Below, one piece after another: positions 485 through 50,742 of a DNA stretch of 64,000 nt (positions are counted from its first letter, which is position 1; each line of letters starts with the position of its first letter). The DNA lies in contig OZ176051.1 in NCBI GenBank assembly GCA_964247055.1, forward strand, positions 10,416,001 through 10,480,000, written 5' to 3'. The translations under genes were made by a program, and so were the position numbers. Source of the DNA: Paragordius varius (lineage: Eukaryota; Animalia; Nematomorpha). A model generated the notes under the pieces. The model was not told the origin of the DNA and did no database searches. It saw only the letters and a list, made by a program, of their open reading frames with translations.

Positions 485-2690
485 GATTTCACCAACAATC
501 GACCATCATTTTTCAACACAATCAATTATTTATATAGGCTATCAAGAGTTATATAAACATTGATTTTCAACAATCAAATTATAATACGCACGCTATCAAG
601 ATTATCAACAATCAACCATTCTTTTTCAACATTAAATATGCTATTAAGAGTATCACCAGCAATCAACCATTCTATTCTAATAATAAATTATTTTACCCAT
701 GCTATCAAGAATTTTACCAACAACCAACATTTTTTTAACAAAAAACCATTGTTTTGACCATTCATTTTCAACAATCAAAGTGTATTAACCATGTTATTAT
801 ATGTTTCACCAACAATCAACCATCCTTTTTCAATATTGAAATAAAAATACTCATGCTAATAGTTTCAGCAACAACCAATTCTTTTTGAAACATTAATCAA
901 ATTATTTTACCCATGCTATTAAAATTATTAACAATCAACCATCATTGTTCTTAAATCAAATTATATTACATATGTTATTCAATGTTTCACTAAAATCTTC
1001 CATTTTTATTCAGCAATTAATCATAAAACACATGATATTAAGAGTATTACCAATGATTAACTATTTTTTTATCATATTATCTATGCTATCAAGAGGTTCA
1101 TCAACAATCGACCATTATGTTTTAAAAATCAAATTATTTTACCCATGGTAAAAATTTCACCAATTATCAACCACCACTTTTTAATAATTCAATCATAATA
1201 CTCATGCTAATAGTTTCAGCAACAATTTTTGAAACAATAATCAAATTATTTTACCCATGCTATTAAAATTATTAACAATCAACCATCATTGTTCTTAAAT
1301 CAAATTATATTACATATGTAATTCAATGTTTCACTAAAATCATCCATTTTTCAGTAATTAATTATAAAACCCAAGCTATTAAGAGTAGTACTAATAATTG
1401 AACATTTTTTATTAAATTGTATCCATGTTATCAAGAACAATTCTTTTTTAACAATCAACCATTATTTTTCCACAATAAAATTATACCCATGCTATCAAAG
1501 GTTACACTAACGATCCCATTTTCTTTCAATAATCAAATTATTTTATGGTAAATGATTTCGTCAACAATCAACTATCATTAATCAACCATCAAATTATAAT
1601 ACCCATACTATCAATATTTTACCATCGATCAACAATTCTTTTTCAACAATCAAATTATATTACATGCTATTGAAGGTTTCGCCAACAATCCCATTCTTTA
1701 ATCAAATTATTTTACCCATGGTAAAAGATTTCACCAAGAATCAAACATTATTTCAACAATCAAATTATAATACCCATACTATCAATAGTTTTACCATCGA
1801 TCAACAATTCCTTTTCAACAATCAAATTATATTACAGATGCTATTAGGAGATTCAAACATTCAACCATCATTGTTCAATAATATAATTATCCATGCTATC
1901 AAGAATTTTACCAAATATATATCCCAATTATTCAACAATCAATTTATAATACCCATGCTATTTAAAGTACAAACAATCAACCATCATTGTTCATCATTCA
2001 AATTATATTAACCATGATATAATGTTTCACCAATATCATCCATTTTTTCTGCAATCAAATGTAATACTCAAGAGTTTCACCAAACAAGCAATTTTTTTCA
2101 ACAATCAAATTATTATACTGCTATTAAAGTTTCACCAAAAATCATCCATCATTATTTAACAAACGAATTAGTTTACCTATTATTATAATTTTCACCAACA
2201 ATCAAACATTATTTCAACAATCTAATTATATTACCCATGCCATTAAAAGTCATGACTCAACCGTTTTTTAACAATCAAATTTCTCTACCCATGTTATTAA
2301 ATGTTTCACCAACAATCAACCATTCCTTTTTTAAGAAATTATACCCATTCTATTAACAGTTTCACACGATTTAATCATTATTATTCAACACTCAAATTGT
2401 TTTACCCATGTTTTTAAAACTTAAAACAATCAACCATCATTTTCACCAAAAAATCATATTACCCATGTAATTAGCTTTCCTCAAAATCAAACAACATTTT
2501 TCAATGTTCTAATTTATTACCCATGCTAAAAGTTTTACCAACAATAAACCATCATTTTTCAACATTCAAATTCTTTTAACCGTTTCAACCACAATCAACC
2601 ATAATTTTTCAGTACTTTAAATATGTTCATGCTATGAAGAGTTTTACCAACATTAACCATCACTTTTCAGCAATAGTGTTATCCAAACTC
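485..2690. repeat. Degenerate ~62-bp tandem satellite (roughly 35 units)
   Basis: Recurring consensus ~TTCACCAACAATCAACCATCATTTTTCAACAATCAAATTATATTACCCATGCTATCAAGAGT; the + strand is G-poor. The ORFs at 560, 945 and 1664 are by-products of the repeat. Confidence 0.9.
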
Positions 2691-5545
2691 GAAGTTTTTT
2701 TAAATCAAATTATTTGAATTGGTCGTGACTAATAGCTTTGACGCTAGTAAATCCATTAAATTTTAACCAAGATTGTATTTTTTTTACCTAATTCATGTTA
2801 AATAAAACCGGTTTCCCCTGTCGCCGTTGGTGTGATTTATTCATACTATGATTTTGACATATTATTTTTTTCAATCCATTCGAGGTGATTAAACAAAGAA
2901 ACATGTAAATTATTTTTTAATGGGTTAATAATGAATAAAAACCTTTGAAATTTGGTATAAATAGGGTAAATTTTAAAACCCTTCATGCTTTATTATTTCA
3001 GATATTCTTTGGCGATTCGGGTATGGGGTTGTATCCCTAAATAGTTCAGAATATTACCACAAGGAAGGATGTTTCAACACGTTATATTTATATGGTAATC
3101 AGTTTTTCGCGCATTTTTAAATATATAAATATTTTCCTTTATACGGTGAATATCATGCCAAATCAGTGGTCTCATAGTTTTCAGTAATAGCTTCCAAGCA
3201 ACTTTATTCGATATTATGGCGCAAAGCGGTCGGTGCGCTACCTAGTGGCAGATAAAGGTATTCAACTAAAGTTTTTGCCTTAATAACATTTTACTTAAAA
3301 CCATCAGTGATAACAGTTTATTGGGCGAAATAAAATGGTTTAAAAATTTATTTAAGGATTTAGTTTTTCATCAAAAAAAGACATTTCGAAAGGGGAGTGG
3401 GTAAGAGGGATTATTTCAAAAAAGTGGCCCGATGACATCGAAACATTCATAAATTAAAAAATTTCACTTTTAGATTAGGACTGTCCTACACGTTTTTTGG
3501 ATTAAACTCCACAAAGCTAATATTCATTTAGATGTGGAAATATCTATCGATTATAGTAAAAACTATTAAAATAACTTCCACAATTGATTATTATATATTT
3601 TTATAGGTTACTTTGAACGATATTGATATTTTATATGTACGATGAAGTATTTAAATTATGCCACATTTAATTAATTGTAAGATAAAAAAATTATATACTT
3701 TATTCAGTTAGAAAAGACAGCTGGTAAATAAATTGATAGTTGAGTTAAAAATTATTAAATGGTGACGCTTATGTAAAATGTATTAGATTCTCACAAATGA
3801 ACATATAATTAGACCTATATTTATAAAAAGGATATTATTTATTCAGCAATTCAAATTTTTGAACAAATAAAATAAAATTGTCATTTATTGTTAAACATTT
3901 TTTTATACATATATGTTTATAAGACACATATTGCGACAATAGTTGTGTAAATGAACGTTACATTGTGTGTGTGTGTGTTATAAAAATCAGTAGTTCAGAA
4001 TGCCTGATTGATTTTTTCTAAAAATAATTAGTCATAATTTTTTTCCTTTAAATATAATTTTCAGATGCCAATATATGATATTTTATGGAGATGGAAAAAT
4101 CCATTTTTTTATTCCACAGGTACAATATCCTCATAATTTGCTATATTTTGTCGGATTTTTTTAATGATCTAGATATTCAATCTTTTCTAGATTGTTAAAT
4201 AGGTTATAATCGATATTTTAAATGGTATCTAACGGCGTGGTTTTCTTGCACATTTTTTAATATTAAATATTGGTCCTATATAATATATAAACAATAATGC
4301 AGATTAAATAAATAGATTTATAAAATATCAATAGCCTTAGGAAAATTATGATTTGCAGGTGAATATATTTTGAATAAAATGGATTTTTTGCAATATAAAG
4401 TATATATAATTTCAACACATGTACACTACCAATTATTTTCACTACACCAATTTACCTACAAAATGTTGGTTTATCTGACTTTGACAGTGGTGAGCATTTT
4501 TAGCGCCTAATATATAATGGCTCTTATCTATTCGAATATGCCAATAAAATTATTTTTAATAGCAAGAATCACATACCCCTATTAATATGAGATATATTCG
4601 TGAATATTTTGTGATTAAATTTTTTCAAATCCATAATTTAGAGTTGAGTGTTATTAGCAAGTAAAATTATGGTTTATAATACCCTGTATTATTAAATATT
4701 GTAGTTCATCTAATACAACGAGGTAAATCTATACATTTAATAATTGATGACATTTTAAAAATTTAAACTAAATTTAAAAATTTTCAAATTATACTAATTT
4801 AACTTAGATTTTCAAAGCTTTAACGCATCTTTTAATGGTTTTCACATGTTAGAGCAAAACCACAAAAACGACATTTCAATTTTTTATAGCCAATTTTACT
4901 TCTTTGGTTTTTTGATGTTTTTATATTTATATAAACATATGGTATAATTTTCAGCGTTTTGATTTTTATCAGAAAAAGTTATAGGCTAGTTATTGAAAAC
5001 GGCTGTTTTTTGCAATTATTTTTTTATATGGCGTTTGACCGTAAAATTTTGAATTCAGAAACACTACTTTATATGATAAAATTGAGCCTCATAAAACATA
5101 CCAAAGAACTACTAATTCGGTACACATTGGATATAAATATTTTTTCCATCGATTTTTCGATGTAAAGCAACATATCAACCAAATGAGAATAAAAATACAA
5201 ATAATTTATCCATAGTTGCTAATTAGGGTAGTTAATACTCCCTACTAACTATAAACCAAGGATGTTTTAGATTATAACCATGTTAGTATCAACTATTAAT
5301 TATTGTCTAATTATAAAAAAATTAGTTTTAATTTTCTTTGATTAACAAACGATGGTGTTTTTTAAATTTAACAGCGCTAAATATAATTATTTTTAGTACT
5401 GACAATGCCAGAAAAATGGCCATATTTAAATATTTTTCTATTTTGTCATACACTTTTAAAGTTGCTAGTTTAAAATATGTATATAATCAATTTTTAACAG
5501 TCATTTTAATAATTATATTATCCAATCAATTTTTTATGGTATTAA

Positions 5546-6606
5546 CCCTTGGATGCAACACATTTCTTTGATTCAAATTGGGATAGTTGGATACCCCAGT
5601 CTTGTTTAAAATTAAATATTTCAAAAATAAAAGAAATTCAAATCATTGCAAGTTTGCACTTATATAACATTAATGAACCAAAATATAATAAAAAATTAAT
5701 TCAAAAATATTATGATATTACAGAGGTAACCCAAAGGTAAAAATTTAGCCAAAATGACACAAGCTAAAAATAAAATTAGTAAAAATTCCATTTCTTTTTA
5801 AATTAATGTTACATGTTTTAGTAAAAAAGTAAACTAAATTTTAGGCCTAAAATTAAAAGACAATATTGTACAATAATATGTAAAATAAAAATGCCCAAGG
5901 AGTTTAATACGGAACTTTTTTTCCAAAAATAAATTTTATTTAGATATTTTGGCTTATTTATATACACTTTCTTAGCTAGAAGCATGAAATTAAATTGGAA
6001 CCGTTTCTTTCAGTAGTTTTACAGTATCAAGTTAAATATTGCTAGGTGTATTTAGATACACCAATATAAATCTAAGTATTAAATGACCAAAATAATTTAA
6101 AATCAAAAGTTAACACGCATAACAAATTTGTTCACAAGCCTTCCTTAACACTCCATAACTTTTTGAGGTAGGTTTATATATATAAGCGATTTCTAATTTG
6201 AATATCTTAAAAAGTAAAGCCATCATACAAAAATAAATTATGGCGCAATTACAATTTTTTTAAAACATGTAAATTAAAAATCTTCTTCTCAAACCTTTCT
6301 GCCGCCATTTTTATCTTTTTTTAGATCATTGCAAAAGGCAAATAAATGTATTTTATGATTGGAAATTTTTAAAAAACTTTAAGCTACATTTTAGAAAAAC
6401 GAGATATCAGCTGTTCGCTTAAATCGTGTAATGAAGTCCCAATTTCGGACTCTAGAACTCAGATTTTAGGAAATAGGAGATTTATATCTATTACATAAAA
6501 AATGTGATATCTCAAGTAAAATAACAAGCTGTAGTTTAATTGAAAGATTAAACTATGGGTCATACTACCCCAAAATGTGGACAAAAAAGCGAAAGGTAAT
6601 GAAGTG
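5546..6606 (+). mobile_element. piggyBac-like non-autonomous element, full-length copy (~1.06 kb)
   Basis: TTAA|CCCTTGGATGC at the left end and GGTAATGAAGTG|TTAA at the right end (TTAA on both sides, CCCTT/CACTT termini). Internal sequence recurs at ~44.7-46.3, 48.2-48.7, 51.8-52.3 and 58.2-59.3 kb. No transposase. Confidence 0.65.
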
Positions 6607-21770: not shown

Positions 21771-24700
21771 TTAATTTTTTAATTCTGATACTTTAAGTTT
21801 GAGTAATGGTTTAAAACTTTCCAATATTTTGCCATGGTATTCATAACATGGTTTTATGCACGCATCATCCCAATATTTGGTTATCGAAGCAATTAAAAGT
21901 TTGTCATTAATTAGGTTGTCTAGAATATTTGTCGTATGTTGATTATCTTGAGATGGCAGCATATGATCAATCATTTTGGGTAAATTATGGTAACATATGG
22001 CAATCCCTTGACGAATAATGAAAAGTTGCAAATCAGCCAAACTATATTGGTTAAAAAAGCTTATATTAGGTCACGATTTTACAATAAAAATTAGAATCAT
22101 CAATTAGCTGACAAAATTTCCGAATTTTAAAAATTATGCATAAAAATGGTGTAAATCCATATATCTTATACTATAGAAGAATTATAATAAATCATATTAA
22201 TATGCACAAATAAGGTAATAATTTTGATAGTGAAAAAAATAAATTAAAAAATATATTGTGATATTTTTTCTACTTTTTTAAACTATCGGCAATAGAATAT
22301 ATGTTGTCGCTATTTTTTGCCAGCTTGTCATCATCATTATTATCTGTCCTACTTTTCAATTGTGACAACAGAATAAATTGTGAGGCACGATTAAAATATT
22401 CGAAAGAGAAGCATAAAATGTTGACTATCGCTTTCAAGACTTCATTAAAGAAAAATGTTTTCTTAGACGTCCTATTCAAAACATGGTTGTCATTATTATT
22501 AAATTTCGTTTCTAAAATGGATTTTAGCGCATTTTGATTATTTGGTAGACATGATATTATCAATTCACGCAAGTCTTCGTTTAGTGTTAAAGTTACGTAA
22601 TCATTGACAGTATCCATATATTTTTGCATAGCCTAAAAATACATAAAACAAAAGGGTCATTAAATTTTTGTAGGATAGTTAATCATGAAATCTAAATAAA
22701 CCAACATACCGTTATAATTTTTGAAGGATATAGAGTTAAGGTTCGTTTTTTCCTGGCAGAAATCTCAGATTCCTGAGAACCCAATGTATAATTATTAATG
22801 TTTAAGTTTAGAATAGCATTGTATTTTTCAAAATCCTTATATGCAATCGATACAGACGTTTGATCTATTAATTTTTCGTCCAACAATATAGAGCTAAGTG
22901 GTTCAAGTTGTAATACATTTTCCACCAAATCCATGTTTTGTTGAAGGCTAAGATTATCTGGCAAAAATAAAAAAATTGAAAAATAGGAGAAAAAATTATT
23001 ATTTATTTAAGTATATTTTACCCGTATCAAGTTTCTGGCATTTAATTTGACATTGCAGGGCTAACATCTCAAGAGCTTGTAACTGCGGATATTCTGTAAA
23101 AATGATAAATAATCAAAATTATTGATTAAATAATTTGTTTTCCTTTATGATGTTTGAGATTGTAAAAAAATATTTATAAACTGTGCATTTCAAAAAATAT
23201 TATCCATTTTTCCAAAAATACCATTAAATAAAATAATAAAATCAAATTTATTAATGTTTGTTGTTCATTTATGGTTTAAATCAACAAAGTAGGTTTTAAA
23301 ATAAATGTTTTCAGCAGTCGTATCTTAAAAACGTTATACAAATATTTAAAAACTGCCTAACTGTGAAAGATTATAGGAAACTGAAAATATACATCATCTA
23401 GATACCAAAAAAATTATACTACCTTTTCTATCTTCAAGTAAAGACTCCATATCTTTAGCATGTTGTTTGAGAACGGACTTTATGTTACTTATCAAATCAG
23501 TGTCTTGTTTCAAGGCAGAGTTTTGTCTTAAAGCCCTTGAATAGCCATTATTATCATTCTTTTTGTTTGCTGCCTCATGTAAAATACTGCTTAGCGTATC
23601 ACCTTTAAATGCGCTATCAAAAATTTTGATAAAATTATCGCTCGGTAAATTTTGTTCTTGCGAGGAAGTTTTAAATTTATCATCATTTTGTAGTTCCAAG
23701 GCTTCAAGTGTACGCTTTCCAACCGATTCTAGCGTGTTAAAACCATGATTTATAACTTTGGATCCCTTTACAAGCACAAAAACAAAATAAAATTTTTATA
23801 AATCATATTTAGATATACACTAGACATTCCACTTGCCTTTCTAACCCCAATTGTAGAATATTATCTGTATAATACGCTTTTTTTTCAAAACAAAAACCTT
23901 TTTAGTTAAAACAAAAAGTAAGTATGTGGAAAGGTGCGCACAACTTTTAGACGGTTCATTTTAAAACAGTGGAAATTTGAAAAAAACATGATTAGCAGAG
24001 ACTAATCTGAAAAGTTACATGGTAAAATCTGGTCTGCATATAAAATCAAAAACCACATAATAAAATGAGTTTAAATCTGCAAATAAATTTATCGTTTCAC
24101 TACTTATGTTTATTGTGATTGATAAACAAAGTTTTTAAAAACCTAATTAAAAAAACGCACATAAAATATGATAAAATAGTACAGATAAATCATACCAATC
24201 CAAACAAGCTCGCTCCAAAAGGCAAAAATTTTGATGTATCTTGTAATCGAGAATTACAATTAGTATCATTCTTATCGACAAAACTTTGTTCATTTGTCTT
24301 AGGAGAAAGTTTTAGCGGTTCCTCAGTTGCCATTGATTCAGGTGAGGGGATTGCCATAATTTTTTCCGCATTTTCAATCATACCCGCAATATTTTTTGTC
24401 AGGGATCCAAACGTAAAAGACCACGTGGGAGGAGATATGTCTGAAACGGATTTGGGATCATAGTTATTTAAATCATTCGAGCCTTTAGTATTTGATTTTT
24501 TATCATCTATTTGGGTATCTTTTGACGTCGCGAGTGAAAAATCGCCGGAAATTTCTTTTGTCCTATGACAATTAAGGTTTGAATTATGTTCGGAGCAAGT
24601 AAATACCCCTTTATAATGAGCTTTAATTACTAAATCGCTCAAATATTCATACACTATCACTATTTTTGTATAACCTATTTTTCTTATTACATATTCAAAA

Positions 24701-25221
24701 GTAAAAAAAGCAAAAAATCGGTACACAATTTTTATAAAAGGTCGTTTTCAAGCCCTTATATTCTTGTGAAGAATAAATATATCAAAACTTATAATATTGT
24801 TAGCCTAAAAAATCAATAAAAACGGCAAATAACCCTATTGACACCGTCTTTTTATTAACTTTGTATATAATATAATAAAGTAATTACGATTGCAAATAGT
24901 CTTTAGCTTTTTCGTCCTGTCTAATATTGAGTTCATCACTCAAATCGCCAAATTTTTCATGAGGTACTTTGTCATCAAAGTCACCATTGTTTACATCACT
25001 TTCGAAATTTTCTTCACTTTGGACGTTTTTAGGTACATGGTGAATCCTTATAAATAAAGAATAAAATTAAAATTTTTAATAGCACATTGAAAAAAAAACT
25101 TTTCATAGTCTTCATCAATATTCTTAGATGATAAATCCTCGATTTCTTTTACATTGATTTTATTTTCTGGGTTCAAATCATCTTCTTCGTCAGCACTTAT
25201 AAACTCTTCCGTGTCCGACAT
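21771..25221 (-). CDS. FAM114A2: FAM114 (FAM114A1/A2, Noxp20-like) protein
   Basis: Phase-consistent exons 25221-25100, 25046-24888, 24682-24196, 23765-23423, 23093-23022, 22957-22710, 22632-22274, 22041-21771. Motifs IAGMIENAEKIMAIPSP, GSKVINHGFNTLESVGKRTLEAL, QLQALEMLA and C-terminal ILESFKPLLKL parallel FAM114A2. An in-frame TGA directly precedes the ATG. Confidence 0.8.
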
Positions 25222-25245
25222 TCAAAATTTATAGACAGCTGTATT

Positions 25246-25301
25246 ATGGATAGTATTTTACCTTCAGAAGTGGATATCCTTATTATTGGAACAGGTTTTA
25301 A

Positions 25302-25358
<57 letters not shown>

Positions 25359-28300
25359 ATATGTGTGGTGCATAAAAAATGTTTTGATTTTAATAATTAT
25401 TAATTATCTATTTTTAAATTAATATATCAATATATTAATGAATTTTTTATTTTAATCCATAATTAGGTTTATATGAATCCATACTATCATCCGCTTGTTC
25501 ATGCATTGGACTTAAAGTGTTACATGTTGACAGGTATTGTAAAAATTTTGAAAATATTTGTTAATACTAACTTGTAATAATTTTATTTAAAAACACTTAA
25601 GTCAGGGGTGTCCACGAAAATCTATACAGCTGCTTTAATAATTAGTTTTTTATTCATTTAAATCCAAGTGGATAACATTAATCGTAAATTTTTGATTAAT
25701 ATCATCATCAAAGGTTAGAACTCCGGATTCAATGTTTTTTTACCACAAAATGATTTTACTTCGTGGTTGAGGGGATTTTTATAGGTAACTCATGCCCTTG
25801 TGCATATCTAATGTATTATAGACTACACTTTTATATTTTTTAACATTTTTAAAACACTAGAGCGTACAAAAGCGTTTTGGACATCCTTGCTTGAAGTGAT
25901 ATTAAATTAATTAATTTTTAAGATACAGGGTGGCATATATTAAGTTTAGGGGTTTTAACTTCATATAAGATCATTATTATATATTTTTATAGAAAAGTTA
26001 CAAATATAAAGTTTAGTTGAAATTGATATATTTAATATTCAATAGCTTCTATAATAAGTTTTTTTTAACGTTTTCACCTTATATTTTTTATACTCTTTAT
26101 TAGCAATTCATTTTATGGTGGTGTTCATACTTCCCTATCCCTACTAAGTTTGAGAGATCGGATTGACAATATTCTGGTAAAATAATTTTTAACAAAAAAT
26201 TTTTATATTAATTTTTCCCATTTTTATAAACAATTTATTTTTAGGATTGTGAAAAATCAAAAAATTCAGAAAATCACATTGGGGTCAATGATTTATCCAG
26301 CTTAAATGAACAAAATCGTCAAAAAATTTTACCACTCAAAAGTGACTCTGTCATACCAATGAATGATATTAATTACGATGAAAAGTAATATCTAACAATA
26401 TTAAAATTAATTTTACAATAAAATTATGGATAAAACCCACCCAAAGGATAGATATTAAACGCAAACCACTATTCAAAACTCATAATTTTTTTTTTGCAAA
26501 TTGCAGTTTTATTATTTTAAACATTATCTAGAATTTTTTTATGATTTCAACTTTATATACTAAAGCTATGAAAAATTATATGAATAATTGTTAAAAGAAT
26601 TTTGTTAAGAATTTTCTAAATTTTGAATAATGATTTTCAACTAATATTGCCAGAAAGGTTTTACAGTTAAAATAAACTCTATTGATTAAAAGAACGAAAA
26701 AAAAATGCTTATCCTTATTTTAAGCAAGCCAATATTATTTTCCTTTACTTTAAACGCTATCTTGCAATAAAGCTTTAAAAATAGACAGTTTTTACTAAGA
26801 TTATGGTTCAAAATTTGTATGGGTAGTTAGAAACTTTACTTGTATTAATTTAATAATTATGTTATAGCTTTGAGAAATTTTTAAATACGTCCGATTCAAC
26901 TAAATCACGTACCATCACCAATAATATCGATTCACCCAATATCGAAACTAATGATTTGGTTTGCACTTTTTTTGCTTTTTTTAAATATACTTACCAAAAA
27001 TTTAAGTGTTTAAGGTAAAAATTTGTTTAAAATATTTAAATATCGAAAAATGTATATTATGTCTGTGTCGCAAATAAATTTTATTTTAGTTTGATTAACT
27101 TAATACTTTTTTTCTATTATATAAATTTCTCCATATTTCAGACTTGGATTTTAAAATATTTTATTCATTAGTTATTTTTCCTTAAATTCTTATAAAAAAC
27201 TATCTAGCAAATTTAATATTTATGTTTTTAATATTAATGTTCTTTTTTACTTTTTATCAGACTACGTGCATTTTGAGGGGCCAATCTAGACTGTACAGTT
27301 TAGATGTAACACCCAAACTAATTATGGCTGGTACAAAATTTTTCGATTTGCTAATACGATCAACAACATGTCGGTATTTAGAGTTTCAACGGATATCTAA
27401 AATTTTGACAACCATCTCACACAATATACACTCTAATAATGATAAGATTAAAGGGAATATTGATGATAAAATTCCCCCCTGTCAAAATGAAATTATTCAA
27501 GTGAATTTGTGTTTTTATCCCGCTTTATTTGAAAGTTTTTTTCCTTTACCATATTTAAGATTAATATTGAATCTATTTATATTGCCATTCATATATTTTT
27601 TTATAGCTGTAGTAAATAATTTTTATATTAAAATCCATTTTAAACAACTACTAAACCTTAAAATTATTAATGTCACACGTTTACAAAAATCTTATAACCA
27701 ATCTTAGTGCAACTTATTTTTTTATCGGTTATCTTAATTTTTTAAGTTTTAATTAAATATTTTATCTAATTTATTTTATTTTAACATTAATAAGAAAAAA
27801 AGTTAGCATGCCATAATTCATAATTTGTTAAAAATGGTAATTTACAACTACAGTTTTCATTTAATAATATATACTTTTCAGGTACCATGTACACGATCCC
27901 AAATTTTTCGAAGTCAGATGCTTACTATGGTTGAAAAACGCTTACTAATGAAATTTTTATCGCTCATCATTATGGATAAATCCGAAATAAATGATAATTC
28001 CGATAAACTGCTCTTAAACGCATTTCAATCTTTAACACCTCGGCTCAAATTAATCTTGTGTCAAGCGATTGCTTTAAAGCCGTTACCAAGTTTTTATTTA
28101 TTGTTTTTTATTAAAAATTAGGAAAAAATTATTTTTCTATAACATCTTTTTATTGTCGTTTTGTAACTATTAGATCTTTACTTTCGATTTCCTAAAATTT
28201 ATCCAAAATATTTGCATATGAATTATTTTGTTAATTATCTGAAACTTAATGTGTTTGTAATAACTTTTTTTTAAAAAATATATTCACATTTTTATTATTT

Positions 28301-31300
28301 TAGATTTAAATCATGCCATATATAAATGTATAGTCTATTACAAATATAAATTTAAATGCGCTAAATAACTAATGTTTTAACAAAATAATTTTTTTGAGTA
28401 TAATATATTAATATATATTTCATATCCACAGGGAACCTAAATACCTTACCCGAAGGTTTTATTCAAAACGTTAAAAATTACTGCCTTGGAATACAGGAAA
28501 TGGCGCAACGAACTGAAAATAGCTTGGCTTCCTCGATCGAATCAACAAATGATTTTGATAAAAAGTTTTACTTATGTTTTTACCTTTTTTTGAATGAAAT
28601 TTTAGATGTTAATTTTTAGGATAAAATTTATTACTATAAATTTACTTTTAAATAGAATATTTATAATGATATATCATAATTTACATGTAACAGGGTATCT
28701 TTGTTGTTTTATAAAAGATTCTGGCTTGTTTCTCTTATTTATTCAATTGATTTTAACCCGTTAAATCTAATTTGAATAGAATTTTAAAAATTTTGAAATC
28801 TATTTTTTTTAATTGTTCACCTCATTTAATTTGATGTAATTAACTACATCAAAGCCAATTCATATTAAATATTTCTTGACAATATCTCATATATTAGAAT
28901 TATATATGTGCATTCTTTTTGAAATTTTATTTGTAAAAAAACATCAATCCAAACTTATAGCCTTAAAAATATTTTTTAAAATTAATATATTTTGTAATAA
29001 TTAAGCACATTATCGGAACAAAACATTAGTCCCTTTTTGTATCCCTTGTACGGATGTGGAGAAATGTCTCAAGCTTTTTGCCGCCTAAGCGCTGTACATG
29101 GACCACAGACATCCTTTGTTTTAAATGCTAGAATTGATGGTTCATATTTAATTATTGTTTTTTTATTTTGCTTTGATGAGTATAGTATAGTCGTTTTTTA
29201 AATATTTTATGGTATTGCTATGTTTCAAGCATATACATACTGTGCACATATATTTTTGGTTACTTTTTATTTTGTTAATTGGGAAACTATTGTAATGTGA
29301 TGGATACATTTTTTTGTTTAAGTTTTGACATATTTTGCTCGCACATAATAAAATTTACATTGGTGATATAAAGTATGCATTTTAATGGTTGCTTATTTCA
29401 CACTATAATAGGGCGATTCGCAACACAGTAGTGTGTTGAAAAAACATATAATGTTAAATAAATAATTATTTCCTTTCTTTTTTCCATATACTCATGTGAT
29501 GCAAATCGCCCTACTATAGTGTGAATTATGCATACTGTAATTCAGTGATACTCAAACCGCGGCCCGCGGGCCGCATGCGGCCCTAAGAGCGCTTTAAAAT
29601 TGCCCTTTGACCATATTGATACTTGAATTATTTTTTTTATTGATGATTTTTTTTTAAATACACTTAAACGAATTTTCGCTTATTTTAATATTATATTATT
29701 CTTTAGATTTAATTTTGGTAATTGTTATTTTTACCCAATTTGAAATGTAGAAAAATTTCCCTACATTACAAACTGATTTCAAAACTTTGGCGCACGTTGC
29801 TTCTGTATTTTATTTTTTTTCCTATTTCGAAGTTTTTATTGCATTCTTTTTTTGTATTTAAGCAAGCCTTTCACCCAAACTTGCATATATATATATATAT
29901 ATATATATTATTCTCATTGCTATCCTGCATCATTTTTTACAACTTATTCCCATAAATTTTTCAAATTAACATAATTAAATTTCGGCCTGTTTTTTATAAC
30001 AAAATTCTTATATTCCTATTTTTTGGAAAAATTTACCTAATCATAAATTCAAATGATGACATCTAATGCTAAAAAACTTAAATTATCCGATGAAAATCGC
30101 TCCTTTAAAAAAGAATGGCATTGTTGTTTTAAATTATAATGACCTGCCTTATATGAAAGGACAACATAATTAAAAAAAAATACAATACTGAAAGACAATT
30201 TACCATCCAAATTTCTCATATCAACAGAATGCGGAAAACAAAAAATACAAAATGATTAAAGAATTATACCAGAAAGAAAAATCTATTATATCCATGGCTT
30301 TCTCCCAGGAAAAAGCTTTAACATTAGCTTCGTATGAAATTTGCTATTTTTTAGGTAAAATATAAAACCACTCCCAACTAATAAAAGAATGTCTAATAAA
30401 TGGTTGCAGTTTGTTATTTGATATAAAAAAAATTTTTCTGAATAAATCATCGCATTGAAGATATGTCTAAATATAATATTTTTAACAATATATTATTGGC
30501 TCTGAAAACTGCAAATATTTTGGTATTGCTATTGATTCTAGCACTGATATTAGTTCAACACCTCAATGTGCGCTATTCGTGCGATTTTGCAACGACAACA
30601 TAATCAACGAGGAATATTCAAAATTTTACCAATGAATAATACCACGAAAGGAAGTTTTCACGATTTTTTGATAATTATATTATATCTATGAAAAAATTGG
30701 TTTCGATCTGTACAGATAGCTGTCCATTAATGATAGGAATAAACAAAGGATTTTTTCTCTTTTGAAAAACAAAAAGTTTGCAAATTATTTTATCCTTTCA
30801 TTGCGTTATTCATCAGCAAAACTTGTTTTCGTCTTTCAAGAAATCACTTCATTCTGTTATTAAAACGGTTGTGTATATGGTTAACCACATCCGTTGCAGA
30901 AAATTCAACCGCTGTTTCAAAACCCTTTGGAAGGTATCCACAGTGAGTTTGATGATATTCTTTTGTAAACCGCTGTGAGATGGCTAAGCCTTAGCAAAGT
31001 ATTAAAAAGATTTTCTGTTTCAAGACATGAAATTCTATTATTTTTAAAAGATAACAGAAGGTTTGACGAGGAAATTAATAGTGACAAATGGTCGGTTTTT
31101 TATTTGACCTATGCGACATTTCTTATTAACTTAGTATTTTTAATACAAGTTGAAGGGAGCAAAATAATAACCCAATTTGCTGATCATAATTTGCTTATGA
31201 AGAAAAACTAATATATATATATACAAGATTTTATAAATTAAACACCCCTATATTTTCCAACAATTAATTCATGAAGAAAATATGGAATTTACCGCGGAGA

Positions 31301-34300
31301 TTAATTTAATAATAGAAAATCATTTAACTTTTTTATCTAATGAATTAAAATTCAGATTTCAAAAGAAATATTAAAAAATGCTTAAAACACGTTAAAAAAA
31401 CATGGCATATGGATATATCCAATATTAAGCAGCTTGAGCATTTCGGTTTTGATCAGGCGCATATTGAAGTTGTAGATTCTAAATGATTCCAAGGGGCTAT
31501 ATTCAAGGAGAATCGTAGGGAAGAAAGATATGCAGAGTTTTGGCAAGATGTGCCAAATAAATATGAAAATATAAAAAAATGTGCTCAAGTTATCCTAACT
31601 GTTTTTCCCTCAACTTACACGTGTAAGAGGGCATATTCAAAAATGAAGTATGTAAAGAATACATAAAATCGCTTAACCGATGATCATATGGACATTTGTA
31701 AAATTGGCCTGTCATGAGGCGAAGCCAAAATTGTCAAAAATTATTGGTTAATGTCCAATACTGTTTATCAATATATTTTAATTTTTTAAACTAAATGGTG
31801 CAAAACAAGTTTTTAGCTGGATTATGCGATCCGCAAAAACCATTGTGCTGATTTAGAGTATAAATAAGTGCATATGTGTCAAAGAGCTATGGAATATTTG
31901 CCATTATAAGGTTCATGGCCCTCGAAAAAAATATATATTTTATTTGGCCCGTCAAATTTTTTTGGTGAGTACCACTGCTGTAATTATTATTTTTCTTCTC
32001 TTTTTTATGTTAGTTAATGTGCATTTTAGCCATAGCTTATATATGTATATATATATGCAGTATGAATATTATAAATTGCTAGAAAGTTATTAATTATTGC
32101 CAAATAGCATATACAACAAAGGACAGTATTATTTACTATTATTAGCCAATAATAATTCTCTTTGCTACATATGCCATATGCCAATAATTAATAACTTTCT
32201 TGCAATAAATACTTAGTCATTATATATATATAGTAAATAGCCATACAAATTTAATTGTGTATGAGCAAGTTTATTTTTTTTTAATTTTTTGAAATTATAC
32301 AATATTTGTCGCAACATTCTATTTTATATTCCATTACGATTTTAAGACTCATATAATTAATATCTGTTTATATATCTAGTGATAGTGATTATATCTATTT
32401 TAAAATCAAAAGTTATAATATTCATAATTTTTATAATGTTTTTGATTTGCATTGAGAAAAAAAATTAATATAAACAAGCATATTTTTTCCGTTTTTTCTC
32501 ACTAAATTTATCAATGTAACTATAAATGTGGACTGGAACAGGCCGATTTGAAATTTATTTAGGCATTCATAACTAATTTATTAGTTTTAACATAAGACAG
32601 TAAAATTCCAACAGAATATAACGATTTTTTCTAATTTTTGTCAATTGGAGAGAATAATTTTGAAAAATTGTTTGTGAAATATCAATTTTAAGATTTTGTG
32701 AGCATCGTAAATTCCAAAATTTTTACGGGCCGCACATTAATTCGTGAAGGGCCGCGTATTGGACACCCCTGATGTAAACTCCATTATCTTTTATTTAAAT
32801 TTCATAAAGCCCATAAAAATATAAATTAACAGGATTATTTATTCTATTGGTATGTATTTTATAGGATTAATTCTACCCGAGGAAAATGAATCATATATGG
32901 AATCCAGTATACCCGACACCTCTGCTCAAAAATCAATCAGGTTTTTAATCTTACAATAATAAATAATTTAAAGACAAAACATAAAGAGTAAAAGAATAAT
33001 TATAAAAAATATATTTTACGATATTACCTATATTAAAATTGTTAATTTTTTTTTATCAAATTTAAAATATATAGGGTTTATTACAGTTTAAAAGGGGGGA
33101 TTTTTCTATAAAAATATTAACTAATTTTTTAATGTAAAATTTCTGAATAATTTAACACATTTATGAAAATTCTTGTTTTAACAAATAGTGACCAACCTAA
33201 GCCCAACACTACAACAGAAGAATCTCATCCAAATCATCCGATTGCCATAATAAATGGCCAATCGGTTCAATTCAAGCACGCATTTATTGAGGAAAAATAT
33301 AAAAATAGTTGTTTGTCTAAAATACCATTTCTTGCTGAGGAGCCTGAATTAAGTATTATACATTTTTTTGCTAATCACAAATTTAATGATCTTTCTTTAA
33401 ATAACCAACTCAATATTTTGTTTAGACTGCGAATCCAAATGTTTACGCTCCATATTTGTTACCAATTCAAAGTTACCTTTACTAGCTGAATATTGTGATA
33501 AAACATCATCAAAACAATCGGATACTTGTTTTAACAATGTATAATAATTCCATTACAATTTTTAATATATAATTATTTTGTCTAAGAAAACGGAATTTTA
33601 CATATGAAAATATATAAAACTTTATTAAAGAAAAAAAACTACGCCAAAGATGATTATAATTGATTTTTTTACTTATTATTTTTTTCTTAAAAGGGTAACA
33701 ACCATTTTATTTTAATTAAATATTTACAATCTTAACAAAAAATGGTATATTTATCGCACGGCCAATTAATTATATTTATGGTTTATTAATGTATATTTTT
33801 TTAATATAGATGTCTTTTCTACACACGTATCTTCCAGTTTCTACGCTATTTACCAAGAAAGATCTTGAAATCATTTTTAATTCTCATGACACCTCACAAA
33901 TTTTTGATACCCTTTTAAATTTTGCCATCTTTGATGTATCGTTGATTGAAATTTGTGATATAGCACAGTGTGGACCAAAGTCACATTTTATCTACCATTT
34001 TATAGTTACGATTGCCAATTCAACCGTTGAAATCATGAAAAATTGTCCACTCACCATATTGTTAAACCACTTTACTAGTCAAAATATTTGTCAACGTATA
34101 CTCACCTATCTATTTCCCTATAGTTTTGCTAATTTTGTTCAAAATGATGAATTAACAACTAATGACTCAGAAAAAATATCCCCTCTTACCACAAAAATCG
34201 AATGGGCCATATATTTTACGTGTCCAATCACTAAAACATTTTACGACGATTCTACATTTAAAAACACTCCTGCAGAAAAAAATCCCGCTGAAAATTGTTT

Positions 34301-34643
34301 AAACAAATTTACCAAGCATGTATCATGGATACCTGGTCCATATACTCAAATTATTCCTTGCGCCATCCCTAAAACAAACGAGGAAATTAATGTAGTTCCT
34401 AACAATAATAATAATGTATTTATGTATGAAAATGAGCATATAGATTACATTCAACACCTATTTGAGGACGTAGTAGAAAATAAATTGACGGCATACGCCA
34501 ATATAGATGGTTTAAGGCCAATCGCTACCAATGTAAGAAATATTTTCAGATTTTCACTGGAACAAGCATTAACTCAAACACGACAGGCTTCAGGCGACCC
34601 TGATAAAGCGAGAAGAAGTGATCCACAAAATAACATAGATTAA
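25246..34643 (+). CDS. CHM: Rab escort protein (REP; Rab geranylgeranyltransferase component A, GDI/REP family)
   Basis: Exons 25246-25294, 25467-25533, 26104-26176, 26245-26384, 26868-26958, 27261-27500, 27882-28089, 28432-28564, 29006-29139, 32865-32940, 33189-33352, 33426-33538, 33810-34643. Motifs MDSILPSEVDILIIGTG|LYESILSSACS...VLHVD, FYGG, VPCTRSQIFRSQMLTMVEKRLLMKFL, PFLYPLYGCGEMSQAFCRLSAV, WAIYF, GP. Confidence 0.9.
25304..25355. repeat. (AT)n microsatellite, about 26 units, in REP intron 1
   Basis: Perfect AT dinucleotide run; shorter runs also occur at ~9653, 10979, 14215 and 52576. Confidence 0.95.
25603..25889 (+). mobile_element. hAT-type MITE in REP intron 2
   Basis: CAGGGGTGTCCA ... 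TGGACATCCTTG termini; flanks ACTTAAGT / CTTGAAGT resemble a decayed 8-bp TSD. Confidence 0.55.
29369..29536. mobile_element. Palindromic ~170-bp MITE (copy 1)
   Basis: Arms TAAAGTATGCAT...TTCACACTATAATAGGGCGATTCGCA / GCAAATCGCCCTACTATAGTGTGAA...GCATACT; a second copy lies in the opposite orientation at 35236-35410. Confidence 0.75.
29543..31977 (+). mobile_element. Full-length decayed hAT DNA transposon (Buster/Charlie/SPIN-like, GTF2IRD2/EPM2AIP1-type transposase)
   Basis: TIRs CAGTGATACTCA / TGAGTACCACTG; perfect 8-bp TSD CTGTAATT at 29535-29542 and 31978-31985; subterminal GCGGCCCGCGGGCCGCATGCGGCCC; 2435 bp; lies in a REP intron. Confidence 0.92.
30053..31715 (+). pseudogene. hAT transposase pseudogene (frameshifts and stops)
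   Basis: Fragments across frames: KLSDENRSFKKEW, FGIAIDSSTDISSTPQCALFVRF (first catalytic Asp), HCVIHQQNL (CxxH), RWLSLSKVLKRF, STYTCKRAYSKMKYVK..RLTDDH (dimerisation domain). Confidence 0.88.
32700..32771 (+). mobile_element. Right end of a hAT-type MITE
   Basis: GGGCCGCAC...GGGCCGCGTATTGGACACCCCTG, the reverse complement of the CAGGGGTGTCCA terminus; the left end is unclear. Confidence 0.5.
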
Positions 34644-48300: not shown

Positions 48301-50742
48301 TAATTGTAAAGGAATACTCATCTCAAACTTCTTTGCTACCATTTTTTACTATAAATTTTTTAAATCGTTAATGCAAAGGGCAAATAAATGTTTATTATAA
48401 TTAAAAATTGTAAATAATTATCTTTTAGAATATTTTAGGCCACATTATACCAGCAATTGATATATTTTGACTTTAGAATCAGCTGTTGGTTTTAATCGTG
48501 TTTCGGAACTGTCCCAATTTTGGGCTCCAGAATTTTCAAAACTGTAGAATTATCTTTTTTTTATCTCATACATGCAATGTTTGATAATTAAATTTTAACT
48601 AAAATAACTTTCAAAACTGTAATTTATTTACAAAATTGTGGGATATAAAATTACCCCAAAAGGTAAACTAAAACAAAAAAGAAAAGAGGTAATGAAGTGT
48701 TAATTATACCTCTCACAGTAATAAAATTTATGTAGAAATTAACGGTTGTAAAAGTATGGTTGTCTTTTAGTTATTACATTTTGTCTGAGTACTCTAAATT
48801 TTTTGCATAATTATATTAAAAACAGTGAAAGTCATCACTTAAAAAAATAGACATAAATATATTATATATTTAAAAAAGGATAAAATTGGTAATTTACGAT
48901 GTAAAAATTTTAAGATTTTAAAATCAATTCGATTGGTACTTAATTGTTTTATTTAGTTGCAACATATATTTATTTAATAAAATACCTAGGTATTATGAAA
49001 ATAAAGCAGTTTAAACAGTACCAAAATATTATAATTATAAAACAGAGATTATTAGAATTACCAAAATGTATTTATCTCAAAAATGTGTTTTTGCTAATAT
49101 CAAACAAAATTTATATCAAAATTTTTCATAACAAATAATTACACTATGGCTGAAATTGTGCTTTCGATTTATTAAAACTGAATATTAATGTTTATTGAAT
49201 TTATAATAAGGTAACATAATCTTGCATGGTTTGAAAAAGCAATAAAATCAAAGATAAACAAACAGGTAACGGGTTGATGAAAAATCTTTGCAAATCGATT
49301 ATATTTTCACAAAAAAATCTTCATTGAGCCTGTAATATTTACTGGGAACAGCCGTAGCAATTTTCAAAAAACCGCTCAAAAATAAACCAATTCAGAAAAA
49401 AATTCGACTTTTTATCGAGACCCTTGATTGAAAAATAAACGAAATTATGCAAAATCATCTCTCGCTTTGCAAACGCTCGTGCTAATTATAAATTAAATTT
49501 TAACAGAAAAATCAATGATTTTTATAATTTAGACCAAGGGTGGCCATCATGCGGCCTCGAGATTTTATGTGCGGCCCGCGAAAAATTTGAAAATCCATAC
49601 GTTATGAAAATATGCTCACAAAATCTAAATAAAATTGATATCTTTTAAGCAAATTTTTCTGGATAAGTCTATCCAATCGGCAAGAACTAAAAAAAACTAT
49701 ATTGTATTGTATTTTATTTCACATATTCATGTTTGAAATCAATTAAATCCTTATGTATGCATGTATATATATTTCGAATGCGGCCCGTAAAACCATTTAT
49801 ACCCCTGATTTTTAACCAAATTGTAATCCACACTAATAAATTAATTTTGAAGGTAATACATTAAAATTTAAAGTTTAAAAATCATGAAAATATAGTAATA
49901 GAATATCGATTAAATATTATCTATTAAACAATTTAAATTGACATTTTTAATTTTTTTTATATTTATTACAAGAGATATTTTTTAAATTTACACAACTTAT
50001 TCAAAGCGATAAATAGATTGTGTGTTGAAATCGAATTCTATAATAATGTCTATAATATAAAATGAACGTTGGGAGTTTTCAGATCTAATTAAACGCTTTT
50101 GTCAAAGTTGTTAATGATGAAAACGGTGATTAATTGCGAAAATAAAAAGATTTTTGATTTATTAAAACTTAATAAACAATCTATTGCGAAAAACTCCAGG
50201 TTAAATCTTTTGAAGCATTCTTTATATACAAATATTTTTAATTGCGCTTATAATAAAAACATAAAATATTTTTTAGAAAACATATACCACAAACCTATAT
50301 TTTGCGGTCATTTGTTTTTATATGAAATACAATTTAATTAACGTTTCCTTAATACTTATGTATAAATTTATGTAAATATGTGGAAAAAATACAATTCATT
50401 ATTACTAATAATAATTAAATTTAAGTCGATTAGAAATATCAGTAATCATTAAATAATAATCTATCAATAGTAAAAAAATAAGAAATTTTAAAATAAGGTT
50501 ATTCATGATAAATAAAGACAACGACGTGATTAATTATTTTTAACAAACTGCAAAAGTTTAATAATTATTATGTAAAAGGTAGATTTGCAAAAATAAAAAA
50601 TTAAAAAAAATCATACCAAAGTCGTCACAGAAAGTTTTAAGTATTTTTGTAATGAACGTTGGGCTAATTGAGAAATTGTTATATTTCCATCCCCACATGG
50701 AACCACAACACTAAGTTGTCCAAAATTTACAGAGACTTTCAT
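36328..50742 (-). CDS. PARD3: Partitioning defective 3 (Par-3/Bazooka)
   Basis: Exons 50742-50617, 48016-47897, 47490-46644, 46504-46367, 44205-43666, ~43325-43279 (boundaries uncertain), 43129-43013, 42711-42192, 41589-41100, 40745-40561, 39990-39815, 39620-38824, 38575-38062, 37026-36929, ~36836-36328. CR1 MKVSVNFGQLSVVVPCGDG...YDMDDLVSDVLD; RRFSEP (Par-1 site); PDZ1 TLGLHV..GLLVGKIE; PDZ3 LGLSVKG..DLGIFIKSVLPDGAAFH|DGRLLINDQIIAIN; RQS; LRRANSLNSL; NESFRAAL. Confidence 0.92.
44700..46330. mobile_element. Two oppositely oriented partial copies of the piggyBac-like element (44700-44820 plus 45600-45750, and 46005-46330)
   Basis: ACTACTGAAGGAAACGGTTCCAATTT and CGAAAATATCTAAA..GCCATTTTTATTTTACA match 58.8-59.0 kb; 46005-46330 is the inverse and matches the 5.9-6.1 kb part of the full-length copy. 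Confidence 0.6.
44990..45300 (+). mobile_element. 3' fragment of an RTE-clade LINE, antisense in a Par-3 intron
   Basis: Broken reading TKI.LINALIFPIMLYGC..SWTIKK...EMFC.RKIL...FGHIFR...LEKDLMLGKVNG matches the RTE/BovB C-terminus. Confidence 0.75.
48180..48699 (+). mobile_element. piggyBac-like element, right-end fragment (Par-3 intron 1)
   Basis: Shares CTCAAAC, GCAAAGGGCAAATAAATG and ATCAGCTGTT..AATCGTG..GTCCCAATTT with 6280-6600; ends GGTAATGAAGTG|TTAA. Confidence 0.7.
49535..49807 (+). mobile_element. hAT-type MITE (Par-3 intron 1)
   Basis: CAAGGGTGGCCA ... ATACCCCTG termini and GCGGCCCGCG subterminal motifs; related to 18504-18743. Confidence 0.6.

Follow-up and report, generated by a model that had tools for sequence, protein, structure and literature searches.

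Divergent FAM114A-like and REP start codons 24 nt apart in Paragordius varius and comparable tight junctions elsewhere in the genome

In the nematomorph Paragordius varius, a FAM114A-like gene and a Rab escort protein (REP) gene diverge from start codons separated by only 24 nt, and the locus raises the question of where their transcripts begin. A sequence-only reading of this DNA had argued that 24 bp are too small for a conventional promoter together with two ordinary 5′ UTRs. We consider the argument fair, and the ways out that it listed, i.e. antisense overlap of the mRNAs, splicing of a leader or nearly leaderless mRNAs, are the right ones to weigh.

The FAM114A-like and REP genes and their junction

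The analysed stretch, here called the window, comprises 64 kb of contig 2 (positions 10,416,001-10,480,000) in an assembly of 110.6 Mb and 44 contigs. It is eukaryotic, contains spliceosomal introns and has a GC content of 23-33%. Read directly and then re-derived, the start codon of the FAM114A-like gene is the CAT at 25219-25221 (minus strand), and a TGA at 25224-25222 stands immediately 5′ of this ATG on the same strand and in the same frame. The start codon of REP is the ATG at 25246-25248 (plus strand). The 24-bp distance, the in-frame TGA and the palindrome between the start codons were re-read in the sequence and agree in every detail with the earlier description. Both genes are protein-coding, lie on opposite strands and have adjacent 5′ ends. 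The junction contains the following features:

25222-25245: spacer between the FAM114A-like and REP start codons, 24 nt, TCAAAATTTATAGACAGCTGTATT
25235-25242: palindrome ACAGCTGT, with the E-box core CAGCTG at 25236-25241
25198-25203, plus strand: TATAAA within FAM114 exon 1, at −43 to −48 relative to the REP ATG

The palindrome is nearer to the REP ATG (4 nt) than to the FAM114 ATG (14 nt). From the end of its CAG to the REP ATG the distance is 7 nt, and from the end of the opposite-strand CAG to the FAM114 ATG it is 17 nt; between this minus-strand CAG and the FAM114 ATG all three frames are closed. ACAGCTGT occurs as a single copy within the 64-kb window; when the window was shuffled 100 times, 21 of the shuffles contained one or more 8-mer palindromes of its kind. 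The palindrome alone is unremarkable and within chance for a window of this size. The plus-strand TATAAA, if used, would put the REP start site within the spacer; TATA-like words are common at 27% GC. A second TATAAA (25233-25228, minus strand) was rejected as a TATA box of FAM114, as the start site ~30 nt downstream of it would fall past the FAM114 ATG. A bacterial promoter and terminator scan of the window was uninformative for this eukaryote.

The FAM114A-like gene is composed of the following parts:

25100-25221, minus strand: coding exon 1 of 122 nt; the N-terminus (MSDTEEF...) is acidic; GT donor at 25099
25047-25099, minus strand: intron 1, 53 nt; its splicing leaves the frame open through exon 2
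24888-25046, minus strand: exon 2, from the reading frame
inside ORF 24190-24726, minus strand: exon 3, from the reading frame
inside ORF 23394-23777, minus strand: DUF719 exon, match to PF05334
down to ~22270, minus strand: further exons, downstream borders set by eye

The assignment to FAM114 holds, since the exon within 23394-23777 matches the DUF719/FAM114 model (PF05334) with 31.7 bits, above the curated cut-off of 22.4 (E 2.1e-7). Searches were run exon by exon, with full-length relatives outside the exon-length window; at this scale a word search with the 178-aa ORF of exon 3 found no useful relatives, and an exhaustive search of representative proteins with the DUF719 exon returned three low-complexity matches only. 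Exact look-ups with ORFs of the window were equally unproductive. The ORF of exon 1 is open from its ATG. A start codon further downstream was considered as an alternative: exon 2 is devoid of an in-frame methionine and the first methionine of exon 3 follows only after a conserved W-rich motif, so that exons 2 and 3 offer no start ahead of this motif and 25221 is the sole usable FAM114 start.

The REP gene, on the opposite strand, is composed of the following parts:

25246-25294, plus strand: coding exon 1, MDSILPSEVDILIIGTG, with the GxG dinucleotide-fold motif, donor GT at 25295
25295-25466, plus strand: intron 1 of 172 nt, containing an (AT)n run (~25303-25356); upstream of the FAM114 start
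25467-25533, plus strand: exon 2
26104-26176, plus strand: exon 3
from 26245, plus strand: REP-specific insert exon, after residue 62, as expected for REP
near 27278-27400 and 29037-29140, plus strand: exons matching GDI (PF00996)
27882-28085 (approximately), plus strand: exon matching REP-1, from solved structures
25467-34640, plus strand: rest of REP, 3′ end uncertain

The identification of this gene as REP likewise withstood scrutiny. The GDI model PF00996 matches two of its exons, over profile positions 65-107 (24.2 bits, cut-off 23) and 224-255 (25.6 bits). Among solved structures, the exon at 27882-28085 matches solely the Rab escort protein 1 chains 1LTX_R and 1VG0_A (E 2.4e-7) and no GDI chain, and because of this exclusive match the gene is REP rather than GDI. 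Exon 1 carries DILIIGTG at residues 10-17; its 37-aa ORF aligns only with the N-terminal Rossmann motifs of flavoproteins and is too short for a family-level score. Intron 1 ends in the acceptor ...taattag directly before 25467, and the (AT)n run reported upstream of the FAM114 ATG is present in it with ~26 units, ~83 nt away from that ATG. The REP ATG is the first in-frame ATG, GTG or TTG following a stop. The exon matching GDI profile positions 65-107 is preceded by 62 residues from exons 1-3, which fill GDI positions 1-64, and therefore the ATG lies at the normal N-terminus of the family. The ATGs of FAM114 and REP are the only workable start codons of the two genes.

At the far end of REP, a 277-aa ORF (33810-34643) found no database match in a word search; that it belongs to REP is a guess. 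ORFs with the motif KCxICEGEFTLAHGGKHDITKHMETQKH occur on both strands, in the window at 30049-31700 and, within an extended region of 264 kb (the window and 200 kb more of the genome), at ~129912-130523 and ~258089-258544. One of them sits inside a REP intron. They probably represent a family of DNA transposons.

Other tight head-to-head pairs

Five other divergent pairs of this genome were verified, with start-codon spacings of 1-29 nt. In each of them one partner was located by a Pfam model and the locus was then read:

RPL32-BUD31: head-to-head start codons 29 nt apart
RPB10-INTS12: head-to-head start codons 24 nt apart
DEF8-DBR1: head-to-head start codons 1 nt apart
fucosidase-RNase H2A: head-to-head start codons 2 or 17 nt apart
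TRMT10-PRMT5: head-to-head start codons overlapping as CATG, or 16 nt apart

All five pairs have recognisable N-termini (e.g. RPL32 MALHPSKKYNIVKKK, BUD31 MPKIRFKNPPPEGW and RPB10 MLIPIRCFTCGK), and these other tight pairs, at least five in number, are spread over three other contigs. The tight head-to-head arrangement of start codons is a widespread property of this genome, and the FAM114/REP junction is a genuine, clear-cut case of this unusual way of arranging gene starts. The proposal of a compact co-regulation switch for two trafficking-related genes finds no support here: the same architecture joins unrelated housekeeping genes (RPL32-BUD31, RPB10-INTS12, DEF8-DBR1), and since the partners in the other pairs are functionally unrelated, a switch specific to trafficking is not indicated. 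A scan for diverging ORF pairs over the extended 264 kb yielded 120 pairs versus 36 in the reversed sequence, mostly antisense ORFs inside exons, and no further convincing tight pair was found among them; a codon-usage score was too weak to help.

The recurrence also bears on the possibility of an artefact, be it an assembly collapse or deletion of true intergenic DNA or a mis-called start codon. The two reading frames run unbroken as far as the junction, a stop codon in frame immediately precedes the FAM114 ATG, neither protein has another in-frame methionine upstream of its conserved parts, and the arrangement returns at the at least five other pairs on three other contigs, all of which makes an artefact extremely improbable.

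Two of the partner genes carry small inserts. RPL32 (1361-1471 of the RPL32-BUD31 locus, minus strand) has an apparent 24-nt GT..AG micro-intron after codon 31, and BUD31 (1501-2022, plus strand) has in-frame inserts of 24 nt and ~18 nt that resemble micro-introns open in frame.

The comparison with Gordionus consists of one head-to-head pair, found by a BUD31 word search. In the related horsehair worm Gordionus sp. m RMFG-2023 (OX940785.2; positions 3606-4003 of the locus read), BUD31 stands head-to-head with a gene for an RRM protein, the two CDS starts being 392 bp apart. The partner is not RPL32, and neither the partner nor the tight spacing is held in common. Because of the distance of 392 bp in Gordionus, the compression of start codons may be specific to the lineage of P. 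varius. The GC content equals that given for Gordionus montsenyensis (26.93%), whose genome is far larger. A Logan contig retrieved by the BUD31 word search was set aside as genomic DNA of an unrelated, GC-richer organism; neither it nor the Gordionus locus gave transcripts.

On the mitochondrial contig (contig 44, 5980-10320), the DNA beside COX1 contains zero-spacer inverted repeats, the arms of which measure 131 and 97 nt, and 49-52-nt palindromes arranged in tandem. Within this piece, the repeat features lie at the following positions:

53-314: repeat feature
770-1472: repeat feature
4064-4257: repeat feature

Zero-spacer inverted repeats and palindromes are described in the literature as a hallmark of nematomorph mitochondrial DNA (PMC6649704).

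The CAGCTG palindrome and the splice-acceptor question

The sequence-only reading had interpreted the palindrome as a splice acceptor available on both strands. The surrounding DNA speaks against this, because the pyrimidine tracts are at background level and several of the other tight pairs are without a usable AG. The three AGs of the spacer are preceded by 9-10 pyrimidines in the 18 nt upstream, compared with a mean of 8.9 per 18 nt for the AGs of the window (n = 4,732) and 11-15 for the acceptors of FAM114 and REP themselves. In several tight pairs the spacer holds no AG. In the six pairs, the distances from the 12 start codons to the closest AG on their 5′ side are 7, 17, 9, 15, 17, 37, 38, 8, 26, 36, 7 and 126 nt, and these values (7-126 nt, median ~17) fit chance at an AG dinucleotide frequency of 5%.

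These observations weigh on two of the explanations for the narrow spacer. The first is spliced-leader (SL) trans-splicing, in which a capped leader would be joined at the AG before each ATG, at 25234/25235 or 25238/25239 for REP and at the complementary CAG for FAM114. The upstream transcript could then start anywhere and no 5′ UTR would have to fit into the spacer. SL trans-splicing is used throughout Nematoda, the sister phylum of Nematomorpha, and in other animals tight same-strand gene pairs accompany operons and trans-splicing. With outrons and operons as in nematodes, tunicates and flatworms, such a system would explain both start codons almost without genomic leader and tight same-strand pairs, and the AGs 7 nt (REP) and 17 nt (FAM114) ahead of the start codons are placed suitably. 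In contrast to those systems, no SL gene, no acceptor-like tract and no enrichment of AG before start codons was found here. The Rfam SL1 model gave no genome match among the 50 candidates scored out of ~38,000 loose ones. The nematode SL1 22-mer with up to three mismatches gave four matches in the genome versus two in the control; the two best SL1-like matches lie in a dispersed repeat, lack a GT donor and were rejected as SL genes. The search covered leader sequences of the nematode type, a novel leader not being recognisable from DNA alone. In the literature searched, no link between nematomorphs and spliced leaders or trans-splicing was found. CAGCTG is moreover abundant in coding exons, where a strong acceptor would be harmful. 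On balance we regard trans-splicing as improbable, as none of the tests run here spoke for it.

The dispersed repeat itself contains GGTTTAATTACCCCA(G/A)TTTGAA, which is 2-3 mismatches from nematode SL1, forms a small hairpin, is not followed by a GT donor and is located as follows:

1470-1560 in each of two loci: GGTTTAATTACCCCA(G/A)TTTGAA repeat

Its likeness to SL1 is due to chance.

The second explanation invokes non-coding first exons that lie inside or beyond the partner gene and are cis-spliced to an AG of the spacer. AGs exist on both strands, the plus-strand TTTATAG is a plausible weak acceptor, and apparent 24-nt introns near the 5′ end are seen in RPL32 and BUD31. Set against this are the background-level pyrimidine tracts and the need for two extra promoters and donors that nothing speaks for. 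In addition, cis-splicing is unworkable in the 1-2-nt spacers of other pairs and would leave the genome-wide pattern unexplained, and we regard it as quite improbable.

ACAGCTGT appears to be better explained as a copy of an over-represented E-box word than as a splice acceptor. The CAGCTG core is also present at two of the five further junctions checked and absent from three. Together with FAM114/REP it occurs at three of six junctions, each time 4-6 nt from one ATG (REP 4, BUD31 6, DEF8 5). It lies in the spacer of RPL32-BUD31 and directly adjoins the junction of DEF8-DBR1, and each of these loci (3.4 kb and 3.3 kb) contains a single CAGCTG. With a background of 24 sites in 264 kb (9e-5 per bp), ~0.02 occurrences were expected in the five independent junctions and two were observed, giving a Poisson P of ~2e-4, which becomes ~0.02 if the genic density of CAGCTG is ten times higher. 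Genome-wide, the extended word AWCAGCTGWT counts 4072 sites versus 537 in the reversed control and 216 for the palindrome of the same composition AWCTGCAGWT, and is thus ~19 times more frequent than the latter. The copy at the FAM114/REP junction departs from this 10-mer consensus at the two outer positions (25234 and 25243). The link between CAGCTG and tight junctions is newly drawn here and rests on a small sample of six junctions.

In Drosophila, CAGCTG is known as a non-directional core-promoter motif (Ohler 5, NDM5 or E-box1) that peaks just upstream of the start site and only in broad housekeeping promoters (PMC1779564, PMC8842121). The word found here shares with this motif (NDM5 consensus CAGCTSWW) the identical CAGCTG core, the A/T flanks, the lack of direction, the housekeeping type of the associated genes and the genome-wide over-representation. 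It differs in that the fly motif is positioned relative to mapped start sites and the word described here relative to start codons, and in that CAGCTG also occurs in coding exons and in ~300 longer palindromes of A-runs and T-runs. The copies in coding exons include codons 2-4 of DBR1 and a site at 86928 of the extended region. Genome-wide, the order CAT..CAGCTG..ATG shows no excess over the mirror order ATG..CAGCTG..CAT (1066 vs 962), and ATGs 4-6 nt after the word form no peak (956 vs 1174 at 7-9 nt). The latter counts rule out a fixed rule of CAGCTG 4-6 nt before an ATG. Since an association with ATG is absent genome-wide and copies exist in coding exons, CAGCTG is not a dedicated element close to start codons.

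Several further occurrences of the word were recorded. The palindrome A6-7 CAGCTG T6-7 has ~300 genomic sites against 13 in the control, often with CAT and ATG flanking both sides (matched strings only, e.g. contig 2 8208920-8208947 and contig 1 3296108-3296140); the class could be a dispersed repeat or consist of symmetric promoters. A tandem array in the extended region (233807-238999, period ~0.5-0.8 kb) carries ...GGTATCAGCTGAATAAGTCATGG... in each unit and accounts for 8 of the 24 CAGCTG sites in 264 kb. At 147000-147060 of the same region, CACGTG and CAGCTG stand 12 nt apart between a CAT and an ATG, the latter opening a 50-codon ORF, possibly a further two-way promoter with both types of E-box. 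The window has only two perfect ATCAGCTGTT 10-mers, both in non-coding DNA. The one at 6408-6413 precedes the first long ORFs of a plus-strand tyrosine-phosphatase gene by ~0.5 kb, and the one at 48480-48485 lies ~1 kb ahead of those of a large gene on the minus strand.

Transcription starts at the junction

Whatever concerns the transcripts of FAM114 and REP we infer from the DNA. Tentatively, and aware that the case is far from settled, we favour a compressed two-way promoter that is centred on the E-box and produces very short or slightly overlapping leaders. The 24-nt spacer would form the core of this RNA polymerase II promoter, and its remainder would lie within the first exons and the short AT-rich first introns of both genes (~25050-25470). 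Instead of a splice site, the palindrome would be an E-box-type word (WCAGCTGW) that a protein binds without regard to direction. Transcription of both genes would start in the spacer or at its edges, leaving REP with a leader of a few to ~20 nt and FAM114 with one of at most ~15-25 nt, and an overlap of a few bases would be possible. Because two pre-initiation complexes cannot share the same 24 bp, FAM114 and REP would fire alternately, and not together, on any one template.

Such a promoter would resemble the bidirectional promoters of animal housekeeping genes, where one short control region serves a divergent pair of coding genes, expression of the partners is broad and a symmetric, non-directional motif is central. 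Classical bidirectional pairs have start sites up to 1 kb, usually 100-300 bp, apart and separate 5′ UTRs. Here, in contrast, it is the start codons that are spaced so tightly, at 24 bp (1-29 bp in the other pairs checked), and coding exon and first intron must then supply the promoter DNA on either side. Very short or absent leaders are found in Giardia and microsporidia, and mammalian TISU genes have leaders of ~5-30 nt. As in these systems, initiation a few bases from the ATG would allow diverging genes to abut; Giardia and microsporidia are protists, however, and TISU is a special mammalian element with a consensus of its own that is unlike either start codon here. A near-leaderless architecture of gene starts has its known examples in Giardia and microsporidia and is not known to occur in animals.

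The main rival to the compressed promoter is a longer antisense overlap with leaders of ordinary length, a possible if somewhat unlikely arrangement. Each start site would then lie within the first exon or first intron of the partner, e.g. that of FAM114 in REP intron 1 with its (AT)n run and that of REP in exon 1 or intron 1 of FAM114. The stretch of complementarity between the two mRNAs would measure some tens of bases up to a couple of hundred, with the palindrome inside both 5′ UTRs. The short AT-rich first introns on both sides could be nucleosome-free promoter DNA. The 115 nt ahead of the REP ATG and the 149 nt ahead of the FAM114 ATG are free of any ATG, as would be expected of leaders; the chance of this is ~0.02 when the AT run is discounted. 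Over all pairs, by contrast, the nearest upstream ATGs of the eleven scorable start codons (2, 9, 14, 29, 38, 40, 50, 115, 149, 158 and >200 nt) match chance (mean ~55 nt) and give no sign of long protected leaders. Complementary 5′ ends, if pervasive, would form double-stranded RNA at many housekeeping genes. Furthermore, the Drosophila CAGCTG word stands upstream of start sites and not within leaders (PMC1779564).

The other pairs divide the two readings further. At spacers of 1-2 nt (DEF8-DBR1, fucosidase-RNase H2A) overlap is the conservative reading and is favoured, since both start sites fit there only if the mRNAs are leaderless. In the spacer of RPB10-INTS12 an ATG precedes the start codons, by 2 nt in one case and by 9 nt in the other, which is more tolerable with the very short leaders that a compressed promoter would give. 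Counting against CAGCTG as a promoter word, three of the six junctions, a small sample, do not contain it. Animal mRNAs rarely have leaders just a few bases long. It is doubtful, though worth stating, that transcription by RNA polymerase II in this genome starts as a rule no more than a few bases from the start codon, at E-box-centred two-way promoters buried in the first exons of the partner genes, and that many housekeeping mRNAs, including those of REP and FAM114, are nearly leaderless.

On its own, the FAM114/REP locus is of modest practical value, since it is a single case, if a clear and well-defined one, of an arrangement that the genome contains many times. If the start sites do lie in the 24-bp spacer or in the coding exon of the partner, this genome would reveal the degree of compression that an animal promoter can reach, and that promoter words can be laid over the protein code. 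Gene finding would be affected, because start codons without room for a 5′ UTR are usually rejected. The architecture would also bear on the choice of start sites, on models of translation that depend on scanning, and on whether Nematomorpha share trans-splicing with their sister phylum.
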